Shown here piece after piece: positions 3,001-64,000 of a stretch of DNA of 64,000 bases. Under the pieces are notes generated by a model. It made no database searches. It was not told where the DNA came from and saw only the letters and a program-made list of their open reading frames with translations. This DNA is from Utricularia gibba (lineage: Eukaryota > Plantae > Magnoliophyta). The translations under genes were made by a program, and so were the position numbers. Within the stretch, counting starts at the first letter, position 1. Every line of letters starts with the position of its first letter. Location: the NCBI GenBank assembly GCA_002189035.1, contig NEEC01000002.1:2418001-2482000 (forward strand). Reading direction: 5' to 3'.

Positions 3001-6000
3001 TGATTCAAATTTTAAAAATCATAAAAAGAAAAAAAGTTAACAAAATTATTACAGGAGGCATGAAATCATGCAGTACGTGAAAAGAAGACACCTAAAAATT
3101 TCCAATGTGTGATAAGCAATAGCAACACCGAATTACTAATGAACTTAACTGCAATGTTTTTAACTCAACAATTTCCATGCCCAGTCATCTCAAACCAGTA
3201 TTTACTTACTTGTTAACTGATGAACTATCCTCAGGTGCATTCATCTCTGAGAAACGATTCCTTATCATCACTTCTTCTCTGGCACAGGCTGCAGCAGCTC
3301 TGACTTCTTCTTCAGAGAGACCCTTTGAAGAAGGAGGTATTTAAATTAGAAGATATCCACCAAATGTAAGTTACACAAAGGCAGCAGGACCTACATACTG
3401 TCATCATCAATAATAGGGAAGAAAAAAATAGCTTAAGAGAAAATTTCCATTCAAGAAGCAAGAGCTAGAGTAGCAAACTTTAGACACATTCCTTTATCTC
3501 CACATATAATTTCAGCATTCTCTATGCTTCTTAAGCATTTATGATAACACAGGACGTAGGCTACAAAGTGCACCAATGGACGCAATAAGGAGCTAAAGAA
3601 ACAAAATGAAATAGGTACCTGTGCACGTGCAGCTGCAGCTGCAGCATTAGCAGTCTCCTCAACCTCCTGCTGTTTTTTCGCAGCAGTGATTTTGCTGCCC
3701 AGTTTGTGAAGATAATCCTCAGTCTGGGTCAAAAAAGAAGAAAGAACTGCATATCTTTCTGCAGCCTCCCCTGGAACATTAGTCTGTTGCTCAAGCAACA
3801 TCTCTCTGTATCTTTCCACATCATTATTTTTTAATGCTTCCATTCTCTTATTTCGATCATCATCCTTGTTTTTGGAAAATTCCCTCAGCATTCTTTCATG
3901 GTATTTATGAACTCCCCTATTTCGAGCAGTTCGGGCATCACGGATGGCCCAGTGTGCTTCAAGAAGCTTCTTCCGCCATTGAAATACAGATTTCAAGTGT
4001 TTCTCCCTGGTTGCTTTCAAAGTAGCATGAGCTTGTCTGTTAAGCTCCTGACGCTGACGCTCACACAGCCTAATGAACTTCCTGTAAGGCCTCTCCGGCA
4101 TTGCCATGATTTCCTGCTGCTGCTTTTCTATCTCATCCCTCAAACGCGCCTGCACCTCTGCAAGCTGGAGTTTTTTCGATTCAATTTGCAGCCGCATGAC
4201 TAGATCTGGTCTAATCCTCTTCCTTTCCAAATTCACAGCAAGTATCCTATCAATCTTGCTTATCTTCTCTTGTCTTTTTCCTTTACGTATTACATCAATT
4301 CCACCAGCAAAGAGGTCAGTAATATCATATGCCAGAGTCAAATTATTGTTGCTGTTCATCAAAGATGGCCCCAGAGCCTCATGCTTCCGAGTGAAAACAG
4401 GAAAATCAAATAAAGGCCCATGATACTTTCTGGTAGGGGCAGTTTCCCTTGCCTGCGATGAGTTACCTGCTTGAATGGGTTTGTCCTGCATCGGATCTGA
4501 AGCACTTGATGGCTGGGATTGTTCTTTACCTCTTCCCATGTTAATATCACCCTTGACAAGAATTTCCTTTTTTTCTGGTTCATTTCCTGGGTCAGATTTT
4601 GCAGTTCTACTTAGTCCATGGTGCTCTACTTCTCCCGGGGAGTTAGAAACCTCAGGTTGTTTGCTGAAGAATTTGAGACCTGCAGGTTCACAGGCAACAC
4701 AGAAACCCTATCATCTCCTAAGGCTTCTTCCATTGAATTATTTGCATTAAATCCTGATTTTCCCAATCGTGGTCCTTCTCCTACATTATCATCTCTACTT
4801 TCCCCAAGATGCCTATCCTTGCTAATGACAGCAGCATGTGAAACTGCAGGCAGCGTCTGCAAATCCAAAGGTAGGGGGGCAATTGACTGAAGCAGCTCAC
4901 GTGGTAAAGTTCCATCGCCTTTCTGAAAGACAAGTAAAAATGAAATCACAGCAGGATGATAATTCTGCCATTTAAAAAAGATCAATATACAAAGAGCACA
5001 AATCAGCAAGAGAATGTGTTGAGAGCAAACCTTCAAACGCCTGAATGCAAGTATCTGCGCCTTAAGAACATGCAATTGCTGCTTGGTAAATCCAACATGT
5101 GATTTTTGAATCTGTCCAATAGCATCCTGTGATGTTGAAGGATAACCAATATGCTCCTCATTGAATGAAGCCATAGATTGCGATGGAGAACGATTCAGCA
5201 ATCTTCCATTGGGTGGCTGAGAAGCTTCTATAGGAGTGGATGGTATCTTCGAATGTGAACTGTCAATGCCTTGATTCGAGTTGGCTGGCCCTAAAGAAGG
5301 ACTCACTTGAGGCATCCTGTGGCCAGACATAATGGGCTGTCTTGACAGCAAGGGCTTATCCCCAGCGTGTGCAGAGAAATGTTGCACTAGGTGGCTGCTA
5401 GAACTGTTTGCTACAGCAGCACTGGAAGGCACACCAAGGTTGCTCGGTGCAACTGTCTGCCTTGATTTAGAAGAGCCTGATTGCCCCGAAATTTCACTTG
5501 AAGAATGGCCACGTGGTGAACCTTCATTCCCTAGCTGTGGCGAGGCAACTTGCTGCTTGGAAAAAGATCCAGATTGAATAGCAGCACTATTTTCACCCTG
5601 TTCTTGGTGAGAAATCATCCTGGACTGCATGAATGGAGCCAGCTGTGAGATAACATTTGCATTTGCAGGATTCGACAGATCAATACTACATTCAAGAGCT
5701 AATGCTTGGATGGCCTGCATCTGTGAGGCCATAATCAAGTTGTTAGACATGCTCATGACATTTTGCTGACCTTGTTGCCCCAGCATCTGTGCAGATGAGA
5801 CTGACTGTCCAAGAAATGCAGGATTGACTTTTGAATCATTTCGATCATCTGGCTGAGTCCACTGACTCTGATCTCCCAGCTTGTCATTAAGTGCTGCTTG
5901 CTCCAGATATTTCTTGGATGATAACTGAGACTGATTTGATGCTGAAACAGAACCAATCGCTTCCATCTTCATATTTGATAACCGAACATCTTGATCTTTA

Positions 6001-7036
6001 CTAGTATATCCAAAAATTCCAGGCCCCAACTGTTGCTGTGATTGTGTTCCCAAGGTTGATTTCTGCTGTCCAGAGGAAAAAGCATGCTGCAAATAAGCCT
6101 GTTGCATAGAATTTAATATATGTGGCTCAACAACTTGACTCCTGATATGACTTTGCTCTGGAATATTGGGAGATCCATGTTGGCGCAAATCAATAAAATT
6201 TCGAGCTTGTTGAGGAGGTTGCATGGAGCTAGAGACAGCAGAAAAGTTTGGCATCCCATGGATCCCGTGAATGCTCCCTGCTGGGTAGGATAAAAAAGAG
6301 CCATTTGCTTCAGGTCTCCTCAGGAATTGCTGTGGCATCGACTACAGATGACAGCATAAATCTTAGTTTCTTGAAAAATAAACATTGAGAAGTTTAAGAT
6401 CTATCTTAAACAAAGATAAAACCAACACCAAATACCTGAAAACTCATCAAAGCATATGTGAGAGCAATACGTTTAATGATGGTTCATAATGAAAATATTA
6501 CAGGATACATAAATGATATTTTCCAAGCAAAAAATTTCAAATTGAAGTAACACATACCCACAAGGAATTCAAGGAAATTGCATCCTCAATGCCAACTGAC
6601 ACGTGATATAAAATTCGTATGCAAAAGAAACCAGTAAAACAAGTGTTTCCGACCTCTTTTTTTATTCAAAGGAGCAGCGCATCACATTATTTTGCAAAAG
6701 AAGGAAAATATAAAGCCCGCCGAAGGAGATAAAACAAGTTCATCAAGCCAAATATTATCACATACTTAACGAACGTGACTTAAGCGGAATCCAAGGAAAG
6801 TCTGATGTTCAAATAGCAAGAACACGAACAAAAAACACAGAATAAAAAATAGCAGAAGGAGGAAAAAAAAAAACCTGTCTTAGCTGTTGTTGCTGCAACT
6901 GCTGTCTCTGCGGCGGCTGATCAAAAGCTGACACCGCAGAGGATGAAGAGGATGGTGAAGCAGATGCAGACACAGCTGTACTACGCCCATGTCCACCAGC
7001 ACCTCCAACTTGTTGGTATCCGGTGCCTGACTGCAT
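1..7036 (-). CDS. BRM: SWI/SNF chromatin-remodelling ATPase BRAHMA (multi-exon; 3' end runs off the window; apparent 1-bp frameshift near 4660)
   Basis: ATG at 7036 (MQSGTGYQQ...). Exons encode a QLQ domain ([20 protein letters not shown]), [16 protein letters not shown], and SNF2 motifs [32 protein letters not shown] and [26 protein letters not shown]. The frame stays open to base 1. Confidence 0.96.
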
Positions 7037-8193: not shown

Positions 8194-10610
8194 TTAATCA
8201 ACTGAAACTGGCTCCATACTTTCAGCTTCCTTCCTCAGCTCTTGAAACAACACAGACGACAGGTACCGCTCGCCGAAGCTCACATGGACGGTCTGAAGAT
8301 CAGATGTTCTCAAAAGGGTTGCACAATAAGACATTTAAAGAGGGGGGATAAGAGTTCTTACAACGATGAGTTTTCCCTTGTTTTCCGGCCGCCGGGCGAG
8401 TCGTAGGGCGGCCACCGTGTTTGCGCCGGAGGAAATGCCAACCTGAAACGCAAAGAAACAGTTACTGCAGGCCCGATTCGGCCACTGGGAAAGAGTGGGG
8501 TGTTGTTCCCTTTTGATACCATGAGGCCTTCCTTGAGTGCCAACTCTCTTGCCATTTGAACAGCTTCTTCACTTGTAACCTGCATCAGAGCGGCGCTTTT
8601 CCGGTCAGTAGAAACGATAGCAGTGGCGCATCGAGAAGATGATTAGTTACCATGAGAACTTCCTCCATCACATCCATGTCGAGGATATCTGGTTTGAATC
8701 CAACTCCATTTCCAGTGATGTGATGAGGGCCTGAGCAGTTTGTTTCCATTTCTCATGTTTCAACAGGTTGAAGAATAAGGAGGATTATATGCATCTGTAC
8801 CTGGTTTGCCTCCATTAAGGACGTTGCTTTCAGCAGGCTCAAGTCCATAGATCTACATGAAATTAAGGGAATCTGAGACAGAGCTCAAGAAAACACCCAT
8901 ACACTAGAATCCACCTTCACTTCAGGATTCTTGGATTTCAGGTACTTCCCAACACCAGACACAGTTCCTCCACTCCCGATACCCATTACAAAGATGTCGA
9001 CTTTTCCATCGGTGTCCTCCCATATCTCCGGCCCAGTCATCTCGAAGTGTACCTGATTTGAATGTCGAGACTCGTTAACAACTAGTCATCAGCCTGAGAA
9101 TGATGGAACAGTACCTGAGTGTTGGCAGGATTGGAGAACTGCTGAAGCATGAAGGAATCAGGCACGGATTCCAGAAGATCATACGCTTTCTTCACAGTTC
9201 CTCCCATTCCCTTGTTGGGATCTGTTAGAATCAGGTCAGCTCCAAAAGCCCTCATGGTCACTCTTCTCTCCAAGCTGGTGTAAGACGGCATTGTCAGGAT
9301 CATCTTGTACCCCTTCAGGGCTGCCACAAAGGCCATACTTATTCCCATGTTCCCCGAAGTCGGCTCGATCAATGTCGTCTGATAACTTAAACACAATGCA
9401 TCAAATGATCCACAGGCGCAGCAGCCGAGTTGTGAAATGGGATGAATACCTTTCCGGGCGTGATGAGGCCTTTGCTTTCGGCATCGGCAACCATGGCTAA
9501 TGCAGGTCTGGTAGCAAAAAGAAGCTCTTTGAAATAACCACATGAATGCATGAGAAAATGAAGGGGAACAGGGTGCATGTTGCCTGTCTTTGATGCTGGC
9601 TGTGGGCTGAAACATCTCCTGCTTTGCAGCAACATAAGCGCCACATCCTTCAGTTAGCTTGTTGAGATAAACCAGAGGCGTTCTTCCTATTAGCTGCCAT
9701 AGTGAACATAACAATATTTGATAGTATAGTATAAAAGATTTATATCTAAATTTGCATAATAATTATAATTATTTTTTAATTAATTAGTATATGTACGTAA
9801 ATTTTTAATGACTATATCATCTACATATTAATTTTTTAAGTATATGAATGATCTATACAAATAAAGAGTGAAAACTAATTATATCTATACTACTCATCTC
9901 ATATAAAACATTATATTCAATTAAATATATATATATACTTAATTATACTGTATTTAAACATAATACCTTACTAACCTCTAAGATTAATATGGCTAACTAT
10001 CCAATGTACACATTACACGAGTGTAAAAGAGAAGTATGGAATTTGACTGTAGAAAAAAAATAATGAAATAAAATAACATAAATTCGTATAAAATCAATTG
10101 AAATATGAATTTTATTTTATAAAAAAAGAAAATAAAATCAATTGATTAATCCTAAGGAGTATGGAATAACAAAATTGACTCTGTTTCATTTAATTTAAAT
10201 GCTGTCTGGAATTTTTTTCATCACGTGGCGCTATTAATTATTATGTATTTAATAGGGGATGAAAAATCATGAGGAATCCACATTTTGCAAAAATGCCCCT
10301 AAAAGTTATCATAATGACTGATCCACCCCGCCTTCCCCAGAGAAATATCTTTCCTTTTTGGGTCAACTCCACCACCACCCCAGGCCCATATCCTCACCCT
10401 TATCCCTATGTTTCATATCGCTTAAACAGGAGTGGGAAGGAAGAAGATGACCTGAGATGCGTCCTTTTTTATTCTGGTGGCCGGCAAATCCTTGGCGAGA
10501 TCTCTGAGCCGTTGGGCGAAGGAAGAGGAGTCGCCGGCGGCCGTGGAGAACGGCGTTTTGCGGCGGAAGAGAAGATGGGGTATCACCGTTCTCAGACCAG
10601 GACCCGCCAT
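8194..10610 (-). CDS. CYSC1: Mitochondrial beta-cyanoalanine synthase / cysteine synthase C1 (10 exons)
   Basis: N-terminus [23 protein letters not shown], then [15 protein letters not shown]-lysine motif [33 protein letters not shown] and [15 protein letters not shown] at 8194-8196. All splice phases reconcile. Confidence 0.93.
9713..9976 (+). mobile_element. Non-autonomous MITE-like repeat, copy A (in CYSC1 intron 1)
   Basis: Shares ordered blocks with 51284-51529 (TATTTGATAnTATAGTATAA, TTTTAATTAATTA, AATGATnTATACAAAT, CTAATTAnAnnTATACTACTCA, TATTTAAACATA). Boundaries are approximate and aligned by eye. Confidence 0.6.
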
Positions 10611-13037: not shown

Positions 13038-14006
13038 ATGGCAGATAACCAAGGGGAAGATGGCACTCCAAAAGGAAATGAATGGGAAGTTGTAGCTCTT
13101 ACTGAATCTACGTATGCTGCTGCTCCTGGTCCCATTCAGGATATTGCAGATACCGCTGTTGGTGGATTCATTGGACATGATGAGTCAGAAACTTCTGCTG
13201 CTCTGTTCTTGTCTGGTCATTTTGGGGTTGCTGCAGGTACTCATGAGAACTTGCCTCTAAACCTGGAAGAAAAGTTGAAGCCTGGTGAACCAGGGTCTGA
13301 GCCTAAAACTCATGAACAAGAGACTGGTGGAAAACTTGGCCAAAAGGATGAAGAGAATTTACATATTACGGGACTTCTTTCTGATGAGTTCCATGATTCT
13401 CCTAAATTAAATGAGAAAAGCAACCTTGTGTCATTCTATAGTTCTGGCTTTGGAGATGTTACATCCCCAAAATTGATGGAGAAGGAGCATAACGTGTATG
13501 ATGAAACTGCTGCAAGCATTTCAAGTGTGCTCACTGAAGGCTCAGGGGTTTCTGATCTGCATGAATCTCCAAAGCAGCCTCTGAATCCAGCTACATTGAG
13601 TTCACAGAAGCCTGTGGAAAGTGATATGATCGATGAGCTGCCACCCGATCTTCCTTCTGAGTCATGGTGGGGAAAGCACGCCCTTTCCTTTTATGAACTA
13701 GTGAAAACTGCAGATCCATTCTGGTCTGTTGTTGCAGCTGCAACCGTTGTTGGCCTTATAATCATTGGACACAGGTGGCGTCAAGATAAGCCTGAAATTC
13801 TTCATCTGAGTTCTCGCTTTCTTACAAATGATGAGGTACGATTAACAATCATCCTATTAGCTGCATCGTCCTATGGGGATCACCAACCTTTTTTTTCCCT
13901 CCAGGGGCCTAGCTGGGTGGTTTCTCCCATGGCTCAATTCAAAGAGTTCAATTGGGATGGCAAACACGGCCCGCATATCAAGCTTGCTTCGTTTGTGCAG
14001 CATTAG
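13038..14006 (+). CDS. ATI1: ATG8-interacting protein ATI1/ATI2-like (probably 2 coding exons, intron 13836-13904)
   Basis: N-terminal GNEWEVVALTESTYAAAPGP (AIM-like WEVV), SETSAALFLSGHF, LPSESWW, and a TM segment FWSVVAAATVVGLIIIG. GT..AG 69-nt intron followed by GPSWVVSPMAQFKE. Confidence 0.85.
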   Translation: MADNQGEDGTPKGNEWEVVALTESTYAAAPGPIQDIADTAVGGFIGHDESETSAALFLSGHFGVAAGTHENLPLNLEEKLKPGEPGSEPKTHEQETGGKLGQKDEENLHITGLLSDEFHDSPKLNEKSNLVSFYSSGFGDVTSPKLMEKEHNVYDETAASISSVLTEGSGVSDLHESPKQPLNPATLSSQKPVESDMIDELPPDLPSESWWGKHALSFYELVKTADPFWSVVAAATVVGLIIIGHRWRQDKPEILHLSSRFLTNDEVRLTIILLAASSYGDHQPFFSLQGPSWVVSPMAQFKEFNWDGKHGPHIKLASFVQH

Positions 14007-24661: not shown

Positions 24662-26593
24662 CTACTCTGCAGTTTGCTTGGCTTTATCTGCAAATAACAC
24701 ATCCTCAATCCATGCAACGATGTTGAAGGCCATGCTTTCCAGTACTCTGGAGTAGCTCTCCAGCACTGCTTGCCCGACATCCTGCAAGAAATTCAAGAAA
24801 ATGAGTCATCAACATTCTTTGCTTGCTTGTTCTACTCTAGAAATTATTGAACATGCCTTGTTATACTGGATTTTGCTAGCATCAAGTGTAGTTTGTGAGA
24901 GTTCGGGATATCTGAGCTTCAAGCAGAACAGCAAGGTTTCTGCTCTTTGTGCAAGAAAGAAGTTCTTGTTACTCCTGTCAGTATCTGAAATAAGGCCTTT
25001 AACCATTTCCCATGATGGTTTTGAGTAGGAAGTGCACACTTTACGGCGCCATGTGTGCATTGAGGCTTCCACCTCATCTGCAAGTTGAAGTGCCTCATGC
25101 TCAGAGCTCATGCTGAGAGAATCTAGCAGACGATCTGGTGAAAAATGCTTAGCATTGTACATGTAGCGGTAAATATGATCTCCCACGCTAGCCTTTCCAC
25201 TCTGTTATCAGAAAAAGAACAGTGAGTAGTGGTTAACTATGAAGGCATCAAATATGCAAATAGAATACAGCTACCTTAGGAATGGAAGCAAGGAATGATT
25301 CTGGGATCTGCATTTCTGAGAGAATTCCGCTGTTTATCGCCATTGCTGCCTTGTGTATTTGATTAGCACGGCTACGTTTCTGCTTCAAAAGTTTCTTGGT
25401 TTTCTCAGAGAGTCCCCCCTCAGGAACACAAGGAACAGGTAACCACCATTTTTCTTGCTTTCCCGAATTTACTGGCTGAATGATCCTTCTAAACGATCCT
25501 GAATGTATCGAATTTGCCAGCATGCTTCCCTTTTCACCATACCAGAACTCTGCCTCCTGAAAGCTATCCAATATTTCCTGAAAAAAGTATGTATGCATCT
25601 CTATCATGAGCTTCAAACAAAGAGAAACTCTTGTACTTTTGCTTACCAGAAGCATTGCATCTAGTTTCTTCAGTGCTGGCAGGTTCATGTGGATGTCTTG
25701 CCTTGGCAAACTCGTCATCACCTGAGCCATGCTTTACATTGTTAGAAGCACTAAAACTAAGAAGGAAATCAGTGCACTGCACCTTGGTCTAACTACAACG
25801 CTTTATGTTTCGATTAATGAATTCACAAACCTGGATAGATTCAGAAAATGGAAAACAGAATGATGCTTTCAAACCTCTATAGATGTTCCATCTTTCAAAG
25901 TCTGCAGACTGGGTGTGAATTCTTGTATGTAATCACAGACAGATAAGAGGCAGTGCATCTCTCTTTTCCACATCATTTTCTTCTCAGGATGCAGAGGCTC
26001 TAGTCTCTGGTGCTGACCAAATACAGAAGCTGCATTGTACACAGACACTTCTAAATGAAAACGCTTGGAAGTAGTACCATATAACAATGGACAGATTAGC
26101 TTTCATGGAAGTGGTACCATAGAGATTTGTGATTGCATTTGATAGTGTCAAAGCGCTGCAGACCCCTTTTCCACTTCCAGACATGTCTTCTCCCAGCAGC
26201 AGTTTTGAAAACCTTTCTTTCATCAGCTCCATCTCTGCAAATCATAAACTTTTATCATTGAAGAAGTCCAAGAGCTGGCTTCTCTACCTAGAGTTAAGAG
26301 GTCATTGGATTTTCACCTAAATCCATAGTTTCGTTATCAAATCTATGCTTTTGACGCCTCATTCCAAGCTTCGACAGTGCTGCTCGCGCCGGGGACTTCA
26401 TTCCTCGCCAGCTGATGGGAGAATTCACCTCAGAGCAACTGTTGTCATCTGATAAGGCAGAAGCATCAGAGTAACTCCTGCAGCGTGCCAAAGAGTTTCC
26501 CTTCAGAAGCAAGGAGCTCATCGAATCATCTGTTGTATACATCGAACAAGGCAAAGGATCACAAGTCTCTTCAGAACTTGCTCTGCTAGCCAT
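24662..26593 (-). CDS. ROPGEF: Rop guanine nucleotide exchange factor (PRONE domain, short C-terminus; 7 exons)
   Basis: [48 protein letters not shown], and IQYNK|[29 protein letters not shown]. Phases reconcile with one GC-AG intron (24782-24856). Confidence 0.93.
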
Positions 26594-43800: not shown

Positions 43801-46800
43801 GTGATATCAACGGTAACAGTATAAGCAAAACAACCACTGCCAAATCCTGTAAGAACATAGCATATGGTGGAAAAATAAACGCAAGGTAGGGAGAGAAGAT
43901 GAATGCAGAGAAAAAGTATGCAAGAAAACACGTGTATGGAACCTGAAAGAGCAAAACAGAGAATGATGCTCGCCCATGTCGTGACGTGCTTTCACCACGC
44001 TCTTGGAGCACCTGCAATAGACAGCCCAATGCATCAGAGCAACTGGCTCTGCTTCTTTACAAATTTAATGCAATGAACATTGTGAGTTATTCAGAAGGAC
44101 AAAAAAATGAATACATAATCCAAAAACTTGAAGTGGCACCTAACACTAAAAGATCACATAGTTACCTGGAGTACGACAGCAGTTGAAGATAATGCAAGGC
44201 CATTCCCTATAACAAGGGCAGCAGGACCAGCAAGCCCTGCAGCATAACGGGCAGCCAGTCCAACCACTGCAGCTGTCACCAGAACCTGCATTATATGTAT
44301 AGAACTTAGGAATGAAGAGGTTCACAGCATGGAATGATTGTGATAAGTTCTTCGCAGATATCATGCACTCTAGTAATTCACCTGAGCAGATCCCAGACCA
44401 AAAACATACTTCTTCATAGAAACCAGTCTTTCAACAGAGAGCTGCCAGAAAACAATTAAATACCAAGTCATCTAACATCAGCAAATCAAGGTTCAAAGTA
44501 TTTTATAAATTCTAATTTGCACAATAAGCTGTACCTCGAGACCAATATTGAATAGCAAAAAGACAACACCAAATTCAGCGATCGCTTTTGTTCCATGCAC
44601 ATTGTGAATAATAGACAGACCATATGGCCCAATTAAGATCCCAGCAGCCAAATATCCAAGGACTGGACTGCCTACATTAGAGGAGAGGATTCTGAACGTT
44701 AAACATTTCCTAAAAATGAAAAGAAAAATCACATAGAGGATGTCTGACTTGGCATCAAAGTTAATAAAAAAAACACGCAGCATGTTACACTATATGATGA
44801 AACCAAAAAAGAAAAATTAGCAATGTGGTCAGTTAAAAAAATAAAATAAATTTTACCATCTGGCATTTTCTTTCATAGACTTTCATGTGATAGGAAACAC
44901 TTGAAACTTTCTTACCTCCAGGGATTTTCTGAAAAATAGGCACAAATATCACACTAGCCAGAAGTAACCACAACATGTCAAACAGAGAAGCCTCCTCATG
45001 CATCTGGTGAAAAGAAAAGGCAAGATCAATAACAGTTTAATTCTCCAATATCATCTTGCACATTTTAAAAAATAAGTATTTTATCCAACTTAAACCAGAA
45101 TTTAAAAAAAGAAAGAATTTCACACCTCTTTAGGTAGCATCTGTAATAAATTCTTCAAACTCTCAGGAACTTTTTGAATTTCTCTGACAACAGGCATTGC
45201 AATAACTGATGCTTCATCAACAATGGTGGTAACAACACTAGGCTGACGTAAGAAACGGCGGGAAACTTCACCTCGATTGCCATAAAAAGAAAGCCTGCAT
45301 TTCGTGGCACATCATACATTTAGAGAAATACTACACAAGTCCAGGATAAAACAAAATACACACTAATAGCCCTACCCTGCACCAAAAAGTAGTGATAAAA
45401 ACACCAGTTTTCGGAAGTGCAATCTGGAAAACTCCACTATACCACGAAAAACTGAAACTGGTGTGAACTCCTCTTCATCGGATGTAAAAGAGAAGAAGGA
45501 ACCAGAAAAGAAGCGGGAGGATTTGCTTAGTTGAGATTTCGGACCAACTCCAGACGAACTGTCTCTTGCTGCTTCCTTCTGCATTTCTTGTATCTTACTC
45601 TGTAAGGAAACTAACTTATCTCCATCTAATTCCACATCAGTATTCTTTGATTGAATCGTAGTCAGCTTTCCATTCTCATAATCACTATTTTCTGACAAAC
45701 TAGGTTCATCAAAATGGCTATCTAGCAAGGTATCCTGTGACTCAGCAACCACATCTGAAGTTTCCCCTTCATTCTCAAAAACAGAAGTACCAGAATTTCT
45801 TTGAGAAAATTGATCAGAACGGACTCCATCAAATGCGTTATCAGATGCCTCGATGCTGGAGACAGTGAGTTTTTTTTCAGCTCTTTGTAGAGCAATCTCA
45901 GCATCAGTAACTCGCTGGCTGGCCTCAAGCTCATTAGCAACAGCTTGCTCAGCAAGAATCATTATATTTGCTACATCCTCTTCTGCTTTAGAAGAATTTA
46001 GTTCTGCTTGCTCAGCAACTAAGTTCAACCTGTCCACTACCTTTTGCAGCTCTTCTTTTCTAGTTTGCACGTTTTTTAGCTCAGCTTCACAATTAGTTAG
46101 ATGGTCTTGGCACTTTTCTAATTCCTGCTGTGCGGCCAGTAATTCTTCCTGATTCGGTTCTTGAAATTCGTACTGAGAAGTGCCTTCTTCAGAAACTTTG
46201 GGCAGAATTGCGATCCTTGCAGACTCAGAAGCCACTTGTAGTGAGTCCTTGGCTAAAGAAAAAGCCGCCACTGCTGTCTGAACACTTTCTTTGGCAATAA
46301 CCTCTTCATTCAGAATCTCCTGGATATCACCAAGGGCCTTTGTCACATCGCTCCATGCTTTTGCGGCTTCATCTTTCAATGCTATTGCTGACTCTGATAC
46401 CATCTGAGCTTTTTCCTCAAAAATTGCAGTATTCAGCTGAGCCAGTTTTAAATCTCTCAATGCCTTCTGCAGATTTTCTCTCAATTCATCAAGATCATTC
46501 ACGCTATTTCTTCCCTCTCTTGGTATTTTCTCGATGGCAGAAGACCCATGGTTCGACTCAAGAAGTTCAACATCTTTGTCGCTTTTACTGATATATGCTA
46601 CTGAATCATTTCCCTGACACTGTGAAGGTTCTGTACGCCTAGATATTTTAAAACCGTCTCCAGATCTGCTGAAGAAAGAGCTATTATAGGTTTGAAGACC
46701 CCACAATATGTTGTACTGACTTGAGCTACTTCTACCATCCGAATGGAAACAGTATGCGCTGCTTCTCTTGAACTTCTTCAACAAAATGCGCCCGGAGAAG

Positions 46801-46943
46801 GGTTTTAAATCTCTCTTAAGCGTACTTTGAAGATTCCTGCCCCTTATACTTGATTCTATACATATCTTCTCCATTGTCTCCCCTCCAGGGAATTCACCAC
46901 CACACAACGTAATTGGCCCAACCAGGGAACACAAGACATCCAT
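40870..46943 (-). CDS. KEA2: Chloroplast-envelope K+/H+ antiporter, KEA1/KEA2 type
   Basis: Long coiled-coil N-terminal exon ([19 protein letters not shown]...), CPA2 TM motifs [18 protein letters not shown] and [20 protein letters not shown] domain [13 protein letters not shown], and end ...GGTLAI*. All checked junctions are in phase. KEA1 versus KEA2 orthology is not resolved. Confidence 0.93.
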
Positions 46944-58953: not shown

Positions 58954-59393
58954 AACAATTATATTTTTTGGTTTTTTCTGTTTTTTTTCGCATTTATTTA
59001 ATATTTATTTAATTAACACATTACCGATTTCGTGAAATTAAAAATCTAAATATTTAATTATAAGAATATTTTTTGCACTTCACTGTTCACAACAACGGTA
59101 AACCCTAAATGCGGGGTTTTATTCTTCATCCCTTGGCCGAGAGCGCGAAACCTCGTCGGGGGAAGAAACCGGTAATGCTACAGGCTAATTGGAGTTTGAT
59201 TTAGGGTTTCGGTTCATAGGGAAAGGTTTTGTTTCTTTTTGTGAGAACAATGGAGTGTAATGTGAATGAGTTGTGCCTGGCGAACGGTGGGTGTAGTTCG
59301 ATTTTGAATGTCTAATGTTGAGATTGATCAATGCTGTGTTTGGTTTCTTTCAGTTTCTGATTTTGCAGCGTTGGGGTGCTAACTAATCTGCCA

Positions 59394-61351
59394 ATGGAAG
59401 GGCCGGGCCAATCGCTTCCAGAATTTATCGAATCCAGCTTAAATGGCAACGTTGGTGAAAATGAAGAAATTGGTCTGAATGAAGCTGAAAAAATTGAAAA
59501 AGTAGGAGAGGAATCCGATAGCTCGAATGCTGAATCCGGCTTTAGAACGGATCGGGAGGTGTTGGGATCTTTTTTTAGGCGCCTCTCCACGGAGCGTGTT
59601 CCTGTTCGAGTTCATGATATCATCATCCAGGGTAACAAGAAGACAAGGGGCATTTTGATTGAGTCCCTGGTCGAGGAGATTTTGAGGAATGCTACAAGCG
59701 TCCAGCAATTGGCGGGCGCTGCCCGTTATGCGACTATGCAACTGGAAAGCCTGGATATCTTTGATTCCGTAACTATTACGCTGGACGCGGGGCCACGGGA
59801 GCTGCCTGGAACTGCAAATGTTGTCATTGTGGTTTCTGAGAAGGACCCAATTTCTGGGGATTTCGGTGTTTACACCAAACCTGAGGTTAACAATCTTCAT
59901 TAATGCCCTTTGAAGTTTGATTTTCTCCTATTACAATTGGTTGATGATGATGTTTCATAGGTAAAGTCTTGGACATTAGAAGCCTCAGTGAAGGGGAAAA
60001 ATTTGTTTGGCTATGGAGATATTTGGGATGGTTTGGTGGGTTATGGATGGGGTCAAAGCTTAGAACTTAGCACAGGAGTGTCTGTACCCAGGTTTAAATC
60101 GATTTCTTATCCCTTGTCAGCCAGGATTTCGGTGCTTTCCCAAGATTGGCTGAAGTTATCATCATATAATGAGAAATTGCTGGGTTTCTCGCTTGGATTA
60201 TTTTCTTCTGGGAACCATGATGTATCTTACAATCTGTCCTGGCGTACATTGACAGATCCATCACAAATGGCTTCGCCTGAGGTTAGAAGGCAGCTTGGTC
60301 ATAGGTTATCGTCAGGCTTAAAGTATGCTTTTAAAATTGACCAGAGAGATTCTCCAGTGAGACCAACGAGAGGGTTTTCTTTTGCTTCAACTACCCATGT
60401 TTGCGGCCTGTACCCTGACACTCGGAGCCTGCGGTTTGTTCGCCAAGTATGTGATGCTGGTTGCTTGTCTCTTTGAGTTTTCCACATATTGTTTGCCGAA
60501 GCTTTTAGAATATTTGTGCCTTAGGGATTCATTTGTCTGCTAGATTTTGGTCTAAACTTTAGGAGGCTCAAGCTTAGCAGAATAATTTCAGTATGCTTCT
60601 TTCACTTCATTGATAATGGCCATACGGTAAAGTGTCATCTTCTCCATGTTCTTCTCTCTCTCGACAGGAAGCCGACCTTCGTTATGCCATACCCTTGGGA
60701 TTCTATCGCTCATCACTGAATTTTGGAATTTCCGCTGGTTTTATATTTCCATGGGGTGACGGATTCCTGAACAAGTCTTCATATATACCCGAGAGGTTCT
60801 TCATGGATGGTAACGTTTCCCCAGTTTGCTCCTTGAGAGGGCCCACATCAATTTTCGGATTCAAGCCAAGGGGACTAGGTCCTGCAGATCCTAGAAGAGG
60901 CTCAAGAGATAATCCCATTGATGGAAATTCTGACACGTCCAGTGTTGACCATGTGGGCGGTGATCTAGCCTTTACATGCTTTGCAGATTTATCATTCGAC
61001 CTACCCCTGGAAGTTCTGAGAAATGCTGGTATTCATGGGCATGTATTTGCTTGCGCTGGGAACCTCAGTAAGTTAACTGATAAGGCATACAAAGCGTTGT
61101 CCTTGCAGAGCTTTCGTGACACTCTCCGGACCTCCGTTGGGTTCGGTCTCGTTGTACCCACCAAACTGTTCCGGATGGAGGTATGATGAATCAATGCATA
61201 TAATGTATATGAGTGGGTTTCTTTTCCCCTGAAAATGATCATGCCGCCTGCTGAACTTGTGCCGCAGGCCAACTACTGCCATGTCGTGAGACAGCAAGCG
61301 CAGGACTGGGGGAAAACGGGTATACAATTCAGCTTCTCTTCCTATACGTGA
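59394..61351 (+). CDS. SAM50: Mitochondrial SAM50 / Omp85-family beta-barrel assembly protein (4 exons)
   Basis: POTRA region VRVHDIIIQGNKKTR...LESLDIFDSVTITLDAGP, KGKNLFGYGDIWDG, LKYAFKIDQRDSPVRPTRG, RTSVGFGLVVPTKLFRME|ANYCHV, and terminal beta-signal GIQFSFS. Confidence 0.92.
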
Positions 61352-62561
61352 TCCGGTAACGCCTCTTGGCCGGCGGCATTTCTTTCATTTTTGTTGGGGT
61401 GGGATCTCTGAGAGTCCTGGAACAGCTTCCTTGCTTGAGCGTCGGTGAAACGACCCGCACCCCAGCACACGCCCTGGTCGTTCGGTGGCTCCCAATTCCT
61501 AATTAATTTAACCATTATATTCACTGTAGTCGCTACAGTAATCATAACCATTATTTTAAATTCGGACCGAATTTAAACTGTGTTCTATATAATTTTTGGA
61601 TGTTATTTTTACTTATATTTTTATTAAAATTAATTTTGTACAGAATAATTTCTATTTATGTTATTGCTTTTGAAAAAAATAATTTTTGAGTGTTGTAAAA
61701 AATGAGTTAGAAGTAAAAATAAGAAAACAGTTATTTTTACTTATTATTTCTAATTTTGTCATCAAATTTTTAAAAATGTTTTTACCCTAAATCTCCTAAT
61801 CTATTTTTTCAATTATTTTAAAACACATCATTTTTATTTATATTTTTTCAAAAAAATTTCTACTTCTATTTTTTACTTTTTCAAAAATAAAAACAACATT
61901 AAAATTTTTTTCATAATATTCTTTTAGTATCGTACTAGCCCAAGATTGAAAAAAGTATTTCGGTTGAAATTTAGGTTTACGGGATGTACGTTAAAAAATG
62001 GCCAAACTTCGAAATTGGGAATTTTTTCCTAATTCCTTTATCAATTAGACATGTTCCTTCACCCGGATACACCGCGTGTGGGTCCCGCAGTGTAACCCAG
62101 TCCAGTGCCGACAGGAACCCCCGATGCACCTCTGCTCCTTGAGGCTTACGTGGTCCATTACCCATGTCCTTCCTCAACATGGTACATTCTCTCACCTCGT
62201 CATCTCTGATTTTGTTCATATGTAATAGAGCAAATAATTATACATAATAAATTAAAATGATATGATTAGATATATAATATATTGTGAATTAATAATAGTT
62301 AAATATAAATGTGATTCACATTTTTTGTATATTTAAATTTTATATATATGCTTGTTTGATATATCGTATTATCAATTTCAACATAATATCAAAATGTTTG
62401 TTTTACAACATAGTTTTGATAGTCAAAATAATTTTTATATTGATCTGAATTTCGATTAAAAAAAAGAAAAAAAGGAGGTTTATTAAACTTAAATTATAAA
62501 AATTAAATTAATTTATAACTCTAACAATATATGTCATTACAAAAAAATAAATTTTAACTAA

Positions 62562-62936
62562 ATGAAAAGGCTGCGGGAGGTGTTCAAAACCATCACGGGG
62601 AGGCTGATGCTGATCCCTCTGGCCATACTTCTGGCGACGTATCAAGTGAAAGGAATCGATCCCCTTCAAATTCCCATGATGAAACTATTCCTAGCTAACT
62701 TCATCGCGTACTGGACAATCGACGCCGTGAACGGCGCCTGCTCAGCGTCGGACGAGTTGATGTTTCTTCCGGCTTCGTTCACAGCCATCGTCGCAACCCT
62801 CGCCTTCTTTTTTCTCTTCCTGCACCCACGTTGCTCGTTCTACGTGCCGCTCACGCTCTCCACCCCGCTCTCCGGCCGGGATGTTAAACCGGAGACGACG
62901 CTGCCACGCCGTCTACCGCCGCGACCTCCACCTTAG
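62562..62936 (+). CDS. Single-exon 124-aa putative membrane protein of unknown function
   Basis: ATG-to-stop ORF in a GC-rich island with three hydrophobic segments (LMLIPLAILLATY, MMKLFLANFIAYW, FTAIVATLAFFFLFL) and a Pro-rich tail. AATAAA at 62949-62954. No family recognised with certainty. Confidence 0.55.
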   Translation: MKRLREVFKTITGRLMLIPLAILLATYQVKGIDPLQIPMMKLFLANFIAYWTIDAVNGACSASDELMFLPASFTAIVATLAFFFLFLHPRCSFYVPLTLSTPLSGRDVKPETTLPRRLPPRPPP

Positions 62937-63082
62937 ACTTAACCTTATAATAAATGCCCTTAACATTTTCCGGGTTCGCAACGACAAAAAGCGGGGTGGA
63001 GAGCGTCAGCGGCCCGTAGAACGAGCAACGTGGGTGCAGGAAGAGAAAAAGGAAGGCCAGGTTGCGACGATGGCTGTGAACG
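62776..63082. repeat. Long inverted repeat: arms 62776-62869 and 62990-63082, 120-nt loop
   Basis: Manual alignment gives 94 vs 93 nt with 4 mismatches and 1 indel, including a 36-bp perfect run (62809-62844). Bracketed by the direct repeat CGGCTTCGTT at 62770-62779 and 63081-63090. Confidence 0.95.
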
Positions 63083-63591
63083 GCTTCGTTTTATACAATT
63101 TACGCGCCCCACTGTAAAAAGAAAAATTATATTTTGTATTATCTCATTATATATATATTGAAATGATAATATTATTCCCAAGATTCCCTATCACCATTAT
63201 ATTCATATATTACCATAATAAATATGATAATTTACTTAATTATTAATTATTTACATATATAATTCATGTTATCTTATTTCGTATACAAAAAAGATATACT
63301 ATATTATTTACCTTTTTGATATTTTGTATTAGTTTCACATTTTTTACAATGGGGATGCTTCATGAGATCCGAATATAGACACATTTTACTTTTTAAAAGG
63401 AAACCATTTGCCACGTGAATTAATGTCCCCTTACGTTATGGGCTTCGGGCAGTGGGTTCTTTATGGGCCTCCACGTGAGCTCATGGGGAGTTGCCCGAAA
63501 GATTCGTGAACTTCAGAGTTCCTTCCGTCAATGCTCGCTCAGTATCTGATTCTGTAAAGCTCGGCGTTCTCGGTTTCCGAACTGCCCAAGG

Positions 63592-64000
63592 ATGGCAACA
63601 AGGCCGGAACAAGAAGCCAAGCTCCAGGTTTTCCTGCAATGGCTGAAGGTCAATGACTTGCATTTTTTCTTTCAGAAGCTTCTTATTTTTCGTACTTTTT
63701 ATGGTCTTCAAAGTTAACGTTCTCGAAATAGAGCAATTGTTGATACAGGCGAATGGAGCAGAATTACGGGGTTGTGAAATCAAATACTGCGATTCGAGCA
63801 AACGGTTCGGAATATTTTCGTCGAACCACGCGCGTGATGGTAAACACTCAAGAGCTCTATGAATGAAATTCAAAATGCACTGTCTTTAGTGCTCTGAAAT
63901 AATCATCCTTTTATGTAATTGAGAAATTTAGATGCTTTCTTTCCAGTTGTTGCTTTATTCATCAGGTATTGTTGCTCTATGTTGTTTTTTGTTTTTAATA
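63592..64000 (+). CDS. SET-domain protein-lysine methyltransferase (Rubisco LSMT-like class; At1g01920-like), 5' part only
   Basis: Exon 63592-63648 MATRPEQEAKLQVFLQWLK joins exon 63749-63839 ANGAELRGCEIKYCDSSKRFGIFSS. Site II motifs at ~63440-63475. Truncated by the window end. Confidence 0.8.

Follow-up and report, generated by a model that had tools for sequence, protein, structure and literature searches.

A young inverted duplication at the 3' end of an orphan open reading frame in Utricularia gibba, probably an inert scar of fold-back repair

A short segment of coding sequence in Utricularia gibba is followed, 120 nt downstream, by a near-perfect inverted copy of itself, and the locus raises the question of what made this hairpin and whether it does anything. 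It lies at 62770-63090 of the window, by which we mean the whole 64,000-nt stretch of DNA that was analysed. An earlier note had offered two readings: a hairpin RNA (hpRNA) or MIRNA locus born by inverted duplication of a gene segment, which could silence its own gene family, or a foldback or Mutator-like (MULE) insertion that supplied the C-terminus of the open reading frame (ORF). We favor, with a probability of roughly 60%, a third reading in which the hairpin is a young fold-back or template-switch duplication of a coding fragment from an orphan ORF and is probably inert.

The ORF concerned has 124 codons and occupies 62562-62936 on the plus strand, with its stop codon at 62934-62936, as given by the ORF list. 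Its codons 72-103 form arm A of the hairpin (62776-62869, plus strand), a native coding segment that takes in the greater part of the last helix and the first residues of the tail; the codon span given approximately in the earlier note was confirmed from the ORF list. Arm B (62990-63082, minus strand) is an inverted, frameshifted copy of arm A, and the 120-nt spacer, or loop, between them (62870-62989, plus strand) contains the Pro/Arg-rich tail of the ORF, the stop codon and an AATAAA hexamer. When the GC-rich island that holds the locus was compared with the window (blastn), 62776-62869 paired with 63082-62990 over 94 columns at 94.68% identity (E = 1.9e-36), and a repeat search detected the same pair in two pieces, of 72 nt (94%) and 37 nt, split by a 1-nt indel. 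Global alignment gave 4 substitutions and one lost C in arm B, which in the frame of the ORF amount to two CTC>CTG changes, a Phe>Leu and a Val>Gly replacement, and a frameshift. The longest perfect block between the arms is 36 nt (43 nt counting a single U:G), and they have 19 21-mers and 13 24-mers perfectly in common.

On these points the earlier note proved accurate: the arms with their identity of about 95%, the 120-nt loop, the 36-bp perfect duplex (43 bp with one G:U) and the two synonymous changes, two replacements and single lost C were all recovered by blastn, repeat search or global alignment. It had also described weak similarity continuing past the arms (NVK versus DVK), which did not hold up, as the inverted self-similarity of the loop was at chance level (equalled by 61/300 shuffles) and so was that of the outer flanks (86/300). 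The arm boundaries are sharp, with the symmetry ending at the loop and at the flanks. No other long inverted repeat with nearby arms occurs in the 64 kb of the window, and neither blastn nor repeat searches found a further copy of the arm A core anywhere in it.

Folding of 62770-63090, which the earlier note had proposed as a check, gave a structure far more stable than shuffled sequence on either strand. As a plus-strand RNA (321 nt) the region was predicted to fold at -209.6 kcal/mol, compared with -103.8 +/- 5.1 kcal/mol for shuffles (z = -20.8), and as a minus-strand RNA at -226.3 kcal/mol (z = -18.4); 0/100 shuffles folded as well. The extended stem-loop expected of a plant MIRNA or hpRNA transcript is thus present in the predicted fold, with a z of about -20.

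Arm A is the native coding sequence and the template, because the ORF frame, the codon-GC phase and the last helix all run across its boundary. GC at the three codon positions was 0.52/0.37/0.69 before arm A and 0.52/0.47/0.81 inside it, with the phase kept across 62775/62776, and the spacer has a different pattern (0.81/0.71/0.55). The last hydrophobic helix begins 5 to 7 residues upstream of the arm A boundary and extends into the arm, as judged from hydropathy and an AF2 model. Arm B is the copy, since it carries the frameshift. The inverted duplication of a gene segment recognized in the earlier note is therefore upheld, with arm A in the frame and GC phase of the ORF and arm B as its frameshifted reverse copy. 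The host ORF was left intact, and arm B is non-coding.

The ORF is small and of membrane type, and the protein that it would encode has three hydrophobic segments by hydropathy. An AF2 single-sequence model placed helices at residues 2-27, 36-61 and 68-87 with a low mean pLDDT of 61.6, which is too weak for a fold search. Codon-position GC across the ORF is coding-like (GC1/2/3 = 0.56/0.45/0.69); for reference, GC3 is 0.37-0.50 in the neighboring genes. The 124-aa protein appears to be an orphan, because it had no Pfam family, no match in a word search of 5.8e9 clusters, no match in the ESM Atlas and 0 matches at E up to 0.001 among 1.84e9 protein representatives (full phmmer). Two further reading frames overlap the hairpin (78 aa, plus strand; 72 aa, minus strand), and neither had a Pfam family. 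An exact 24-mer of the arm core was absent from JGI metagenome contigs and GTDB genome contigs, which gives no sign that the sequence is foreign or a contaminant and yields no additional copies for comparison.

We consider 62562-62936 to be probably exon 2 of a lineage-restricted ORF family without known relatives. A candidate first exon was placed at 62124-62221 (plus strand, ATG at 62124) from the frame, the donor list and the GC profile. It would be followed by a candidate intron at 62222-62569 (GT...AG, 348 nt, 16-18% GC) with a donor at AT/GTAATA and an acceptor at ...aaaag/G (62569/62570), joining in frame at 62570. A second GC-rich island (62000-62221, 46-56% GC) stands there amid spacer of 13-26% GC, 350 bp upstream of the ORF, and may be this candidate first exon of the ORF family. 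Its 32 codons show no clear hydrophobicity.

The outer junction of arm B bears on how the copy may have arisen. The earlier note had reported a 10-bp direct repeat overlapping both arm tips, and we found it as described: CGGCTTCGTT occurs on the plus strand at 62770-62779, overlapping the tip of arm A by 4 nt, and again at 63081-63090, overlapping the tip of arm B by 2 nt. A common run of at least 10 nt is seen in 0.1% of random pairs of 31-nt windows. The second copy consists of CG, also found at 62770-62771, plus an 8-nt direct patch, GCTTCGTT (63083-63090, plus strand), which is identical to 62772-62779. Across the junction, arm B finishes in ...GTGAACG, GCTTCGTT comes next and unrelated sequence follows it; the patch is a direct copy of arm A's own left edge. 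Apart from this patch, matches of the loop and of the sequence after arm B to the rest of the island were of 7-9 nt and at chance level. The inner junction of arm B carries no information on microhomology. Separately, the outer junction at 63073-63084 (GCTGTGAACGGC) matches 11/12 bases of the ORF stretch 62724-62735 in direct orientation, which may be chance or a further microhomology used in the rearrangement.

Because GCTTCGTT and the CG repeat arm A's left edge, the copying strand would have changed direction where the inverted copy ends. Two marks expected of a repair scar, an inverted copy close to its template and an extra patch or microhomology at a junction, are present here, with the template 120 nt upstream across a spacer. 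A target-site duplication is another possible reading of the 10-nt direct repeat. The direct patch at the outer junction appears to fit repair by fold-back or template switching better than it fits a transposon that duplicates its target site. In the sequence of events that we propose, a break, or a 3' end that had stalled, some 120 bp beyond codon 103 would have folded back and primed on its own strand, and the coding segment would then have been copied leftwards, from 62869 to 62776, as arm B. The new strand would next have unwound and re-annealed through the 2-nt CG microhomology (a second template switch), copied 8 more bases (62772-62779) in the direct sense as the GCTTCGTT patch, and finally been joined to downstream DNA. 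The junction expected before the insertion would run from the loop end (...ACAAAA) straight into TTATACAATT, without arm B and the GCTTCGTT patch. We infer this mechanism from one junction.

Filler DNA and polymerase-theta-type templated insertions are found at plant repair junctions. In yeast, a broken end can fold back, prime at inverted microhomology, unwind and be captured, and the inverted insertions that result measure 2 to ~150 bp and are set apart from their template by a spacer (PMC11724301), a range that includes the arm size seen here. Unwinding is common to yeast fold-back insertion and MMBIR, and in MMBIR it can give further template switches (PMC11724301). The Utricularia hairpin resembles fold-back inverted insertions with MMBIR- or TMEJ-type switching in its nearby inverted copy, its spacer, its sharp ends, and the second templated patch with 2-nt microhomology at the far junction. 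It differs in being a fixed germline event in a plant, read from a single sequence, and most experimental events are under 14 bp. The arms have diverged by ~4.4% (Jukes-Cantor; 4 substitutions in 93 aligned bases). With a mutation rate of ~7e-9 per site per generation, as in Arabidopsis, the duplication would be on the order of 3 million generations old, an estimate with a very wide, several-fold error that would move to an older date if the arms have converted each other.

The same geometry could have arisen in other ways. A foldback, MITE or MULE transposon running from 62777/62780 to 63080/63081, with ~90-bp terminal inverted repeats and a target-site duplication, could have inserted into the ORF; like Pack-MULE, MITE and foldback elements, the hairpin has long inverted termini (94 bp, 94.7%) and is bracketed by a short direct repeat. 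Its layout permits either a 6-bp GGCTTC duplication abutting the repeats or a 10-bp duplication with two unmatched bases. Only the GGCTTC reading abuts the termini exactly, as the 10-nt direct repeat runs 4 nt into one arm tip and 2 nt into the other, and we know of no common plant DNA-transposon superfamily that a 6-bp target-site duplication fits. There is also no further copy of the arm in the 64 kb, and the 55-60% GC and intact CpGs are unlike silenced plant transposons. The left terminus carries on the frame, the GC3 phase and a hydrophobic helix of the host ORF, which disfavors a MULE or foldback element because such continuity with the host is not what an inserted terminal repeat should show. 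Differing from such elements in its single copy in the window, its one native coding terminus, its overlapping direct repeat and its GC- and CpG-rich sequence, the hairpin is very unlikely to be one, and the suggestion that a foldback or MULE insertion supplied the C-terminus of the ORF is not supported.

Arm B read on the minus strand encodes the same peptide, as would be seen if deletions had cut a larger tail-to-tail paralog, or a longer segmental duplication in inverted orientation, down to 94 bp. Similarity past either arm end is not significant, though, so that this history calls for two precise deletions; simple deletion is likewise not expected to leave the 8-nt direct patch, and we regard this history as rather improbable. 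Inverted duplications are also a known kind of long-read artefact, for instance from a chimeric read, and the second arm could in principle be an assembly fold-back. An artefactual fold-back would as a rule have identical arms that abut and are much longer, whereas these arms differ at 5 positions and have 120 nt of unique sequence between them, making an artefact hardly credible.

In a further alternative, a transcript over both arms could be diced to siRNAs that silence the host ORF and its paralogs, as in a working hpRNA or proto-MIRNA. The stem is very stable on either strand, 19 perfect 21-mers are in common with the sense gene, and the passage from inverted duplication of a gene segment to an siRNA hairpin is a well-established model (10.1101/2024.07.25.605110; PMC3237417), with examples that include Antirrhinum, a Lamiales plant (10.1101/2024.07.25.605110). 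Like young MIRNA and hpRNA loci formed by inverted duplication (the Allen et al. 2004 model, Aha-miR217, Antirrhinum SULF), the hairpin is near-perfect, coding-derived and complementary to its parent. It differs from them in that it lies within the 3' region of its parent and its loop contains a poly(A) signal, and in being known from DNA sequence and a predicted fold. That signal, the AATAAA that the earlier note had placed at 62949 in the loop, was confirmed at 62949-62954, 36 nt before arm B, and counts against a sense mRNA that spans both arms. No Rfam 15 match was found in 60000-64000 at E up to 1, although a brand-new locus need not match. In the A. halleri study, a coding-gene origin is rare among very young MIRNAs, and self-targeting hairpins are expected to be mostly deleterious and short-lived (10.1101/2024.07.25.605110).

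Composition bears on this reading as well. The GC-rich island (62570-63120) is 550 bp of 55% GC between spacers of 13-27% GC, and its CpG observed/expected ratio is 1.25, compared with 0.68 for the window and 0.64 for the upstream gene. Arm B kept 9/10 of arm A's CpGs, and 0/4 of the substitutions are CpG transitions, so the sequence appears to bear no trace of long-term methylation; this retention argues against lasting siRNA-directed methylation. In GC3 and CpG ratio, the island is unlike the neighboring genes, and the ORF family is unusual in composition for the region.

Natural tail-to-tail silencing repeats are known at the rice Lgc1 glutelin locus, the soybean CHS I locus, Arabidopsis PAI1-PAI4 and maize Mu killer. 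The Utricularia locus has the same arrangement of a sense gene followed by an inverted partial copy, with possible read-through double-stranded RNA (dsRNA) against paralogs. The repeats at those loci range from hundreds of bp to several kb in length, and siRNAs, methylation and phenotypes have been demonstrated for them, whereas this hairpin is 94 bp and without a methylation footprint. For dsRNA to form here, transcription would need to read through past the AATAAA in the loop, or antisense transcripts would have to come from the promoter region of the downstream gene. The next plus-strand gene has its ATG at 63592, ~500 bp downstream of the island, and the window reaches only as far as its second short exon. 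Searched by itself, exon 2 of this gene, which the earlier note had called a SET gene, had no Pfam family and no PDB sequence match. Two CACGTG (G-box-like) motifs are found at 63412-63417 and 63473-63478, in the ~180 bp before this ATG, and from their positions the promoter region begins within about 300-400 bp of arm B. Given dsRNA, the host ORF and close paralogs could become targets through the 19 perfect 21-mers. Nothing observed points to small RNAs from the hairpin. Taken together, the indirect signs are mildly unfavorable, a working hpRNA or proto-MIRNA is unlikely, and there is only a slim chance of a self-limiting silencing device in which read-through or antisense transcripts give rise to siRNAs that damp a young gene family. 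On the sequence as it stands, the hairpin structure probably does nothing.

The surrounding DNA is that of a plant nuclear genome, with a PRONE RopGEF exon, a QLQ-containing ORF, a PALP exon and an Omp85-domain gene in the window. The Omp85-type gene ends near 61350, upstream of the island. It is a multi-exon plus-strand gene (59376-61350) with an Omp85-superfamily domain (Pfam PF01103, E = 1.8e-11), ending ~1.2 kb upstream of the ORF, and its N-terminal part may be POTRA-like, as in SAM50 or OEP80-type proteins. The PRONE RopGEF domain exon (25248-25730, minus strand, E = 4.8e-41) and the PALP pyridoxal-phosphate enzyme domain exon (9082-9714, minus strand, E = 5e-28) belong to ordinary plant genes. 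At 3451-6338 (minus strand), two adjacent ORFs of 570 and 362 aa were seen, the first with a borderline QLQ domain (23.7 bits versus a cut-off of 23.8 bits) and the second with a charged, HSA-like region that may resemble the N-terminus of a BRM/SYD-type chromatin remodeller. Two further ORFs had no Pfam match at E up to 0.001: one of 523 aa at 45372-46943 (minus strand), which is coiled-coil-like with a hydrophobic end, and one of 322 aa at 13038-14006 (plus strand), with one hydrophobic segment near residue 235.

We regard the hairpin as structural variation of an ordinary kind. As no more than a scar, it would offer a clean plant-germline example of a templated insertion made by fold-back and followed by another template switch, and would also illustrate how the raw material of hairpin RNA genes arises beside young gene families. 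Were the silencing device real, the locus would do for a gene family what Mu killer or Antirrhinum SULF does, caught a few million generations after its birth; and if small RNAs did come from the hairpin it would matter more, with its origin, parent gene and targets all still readable.
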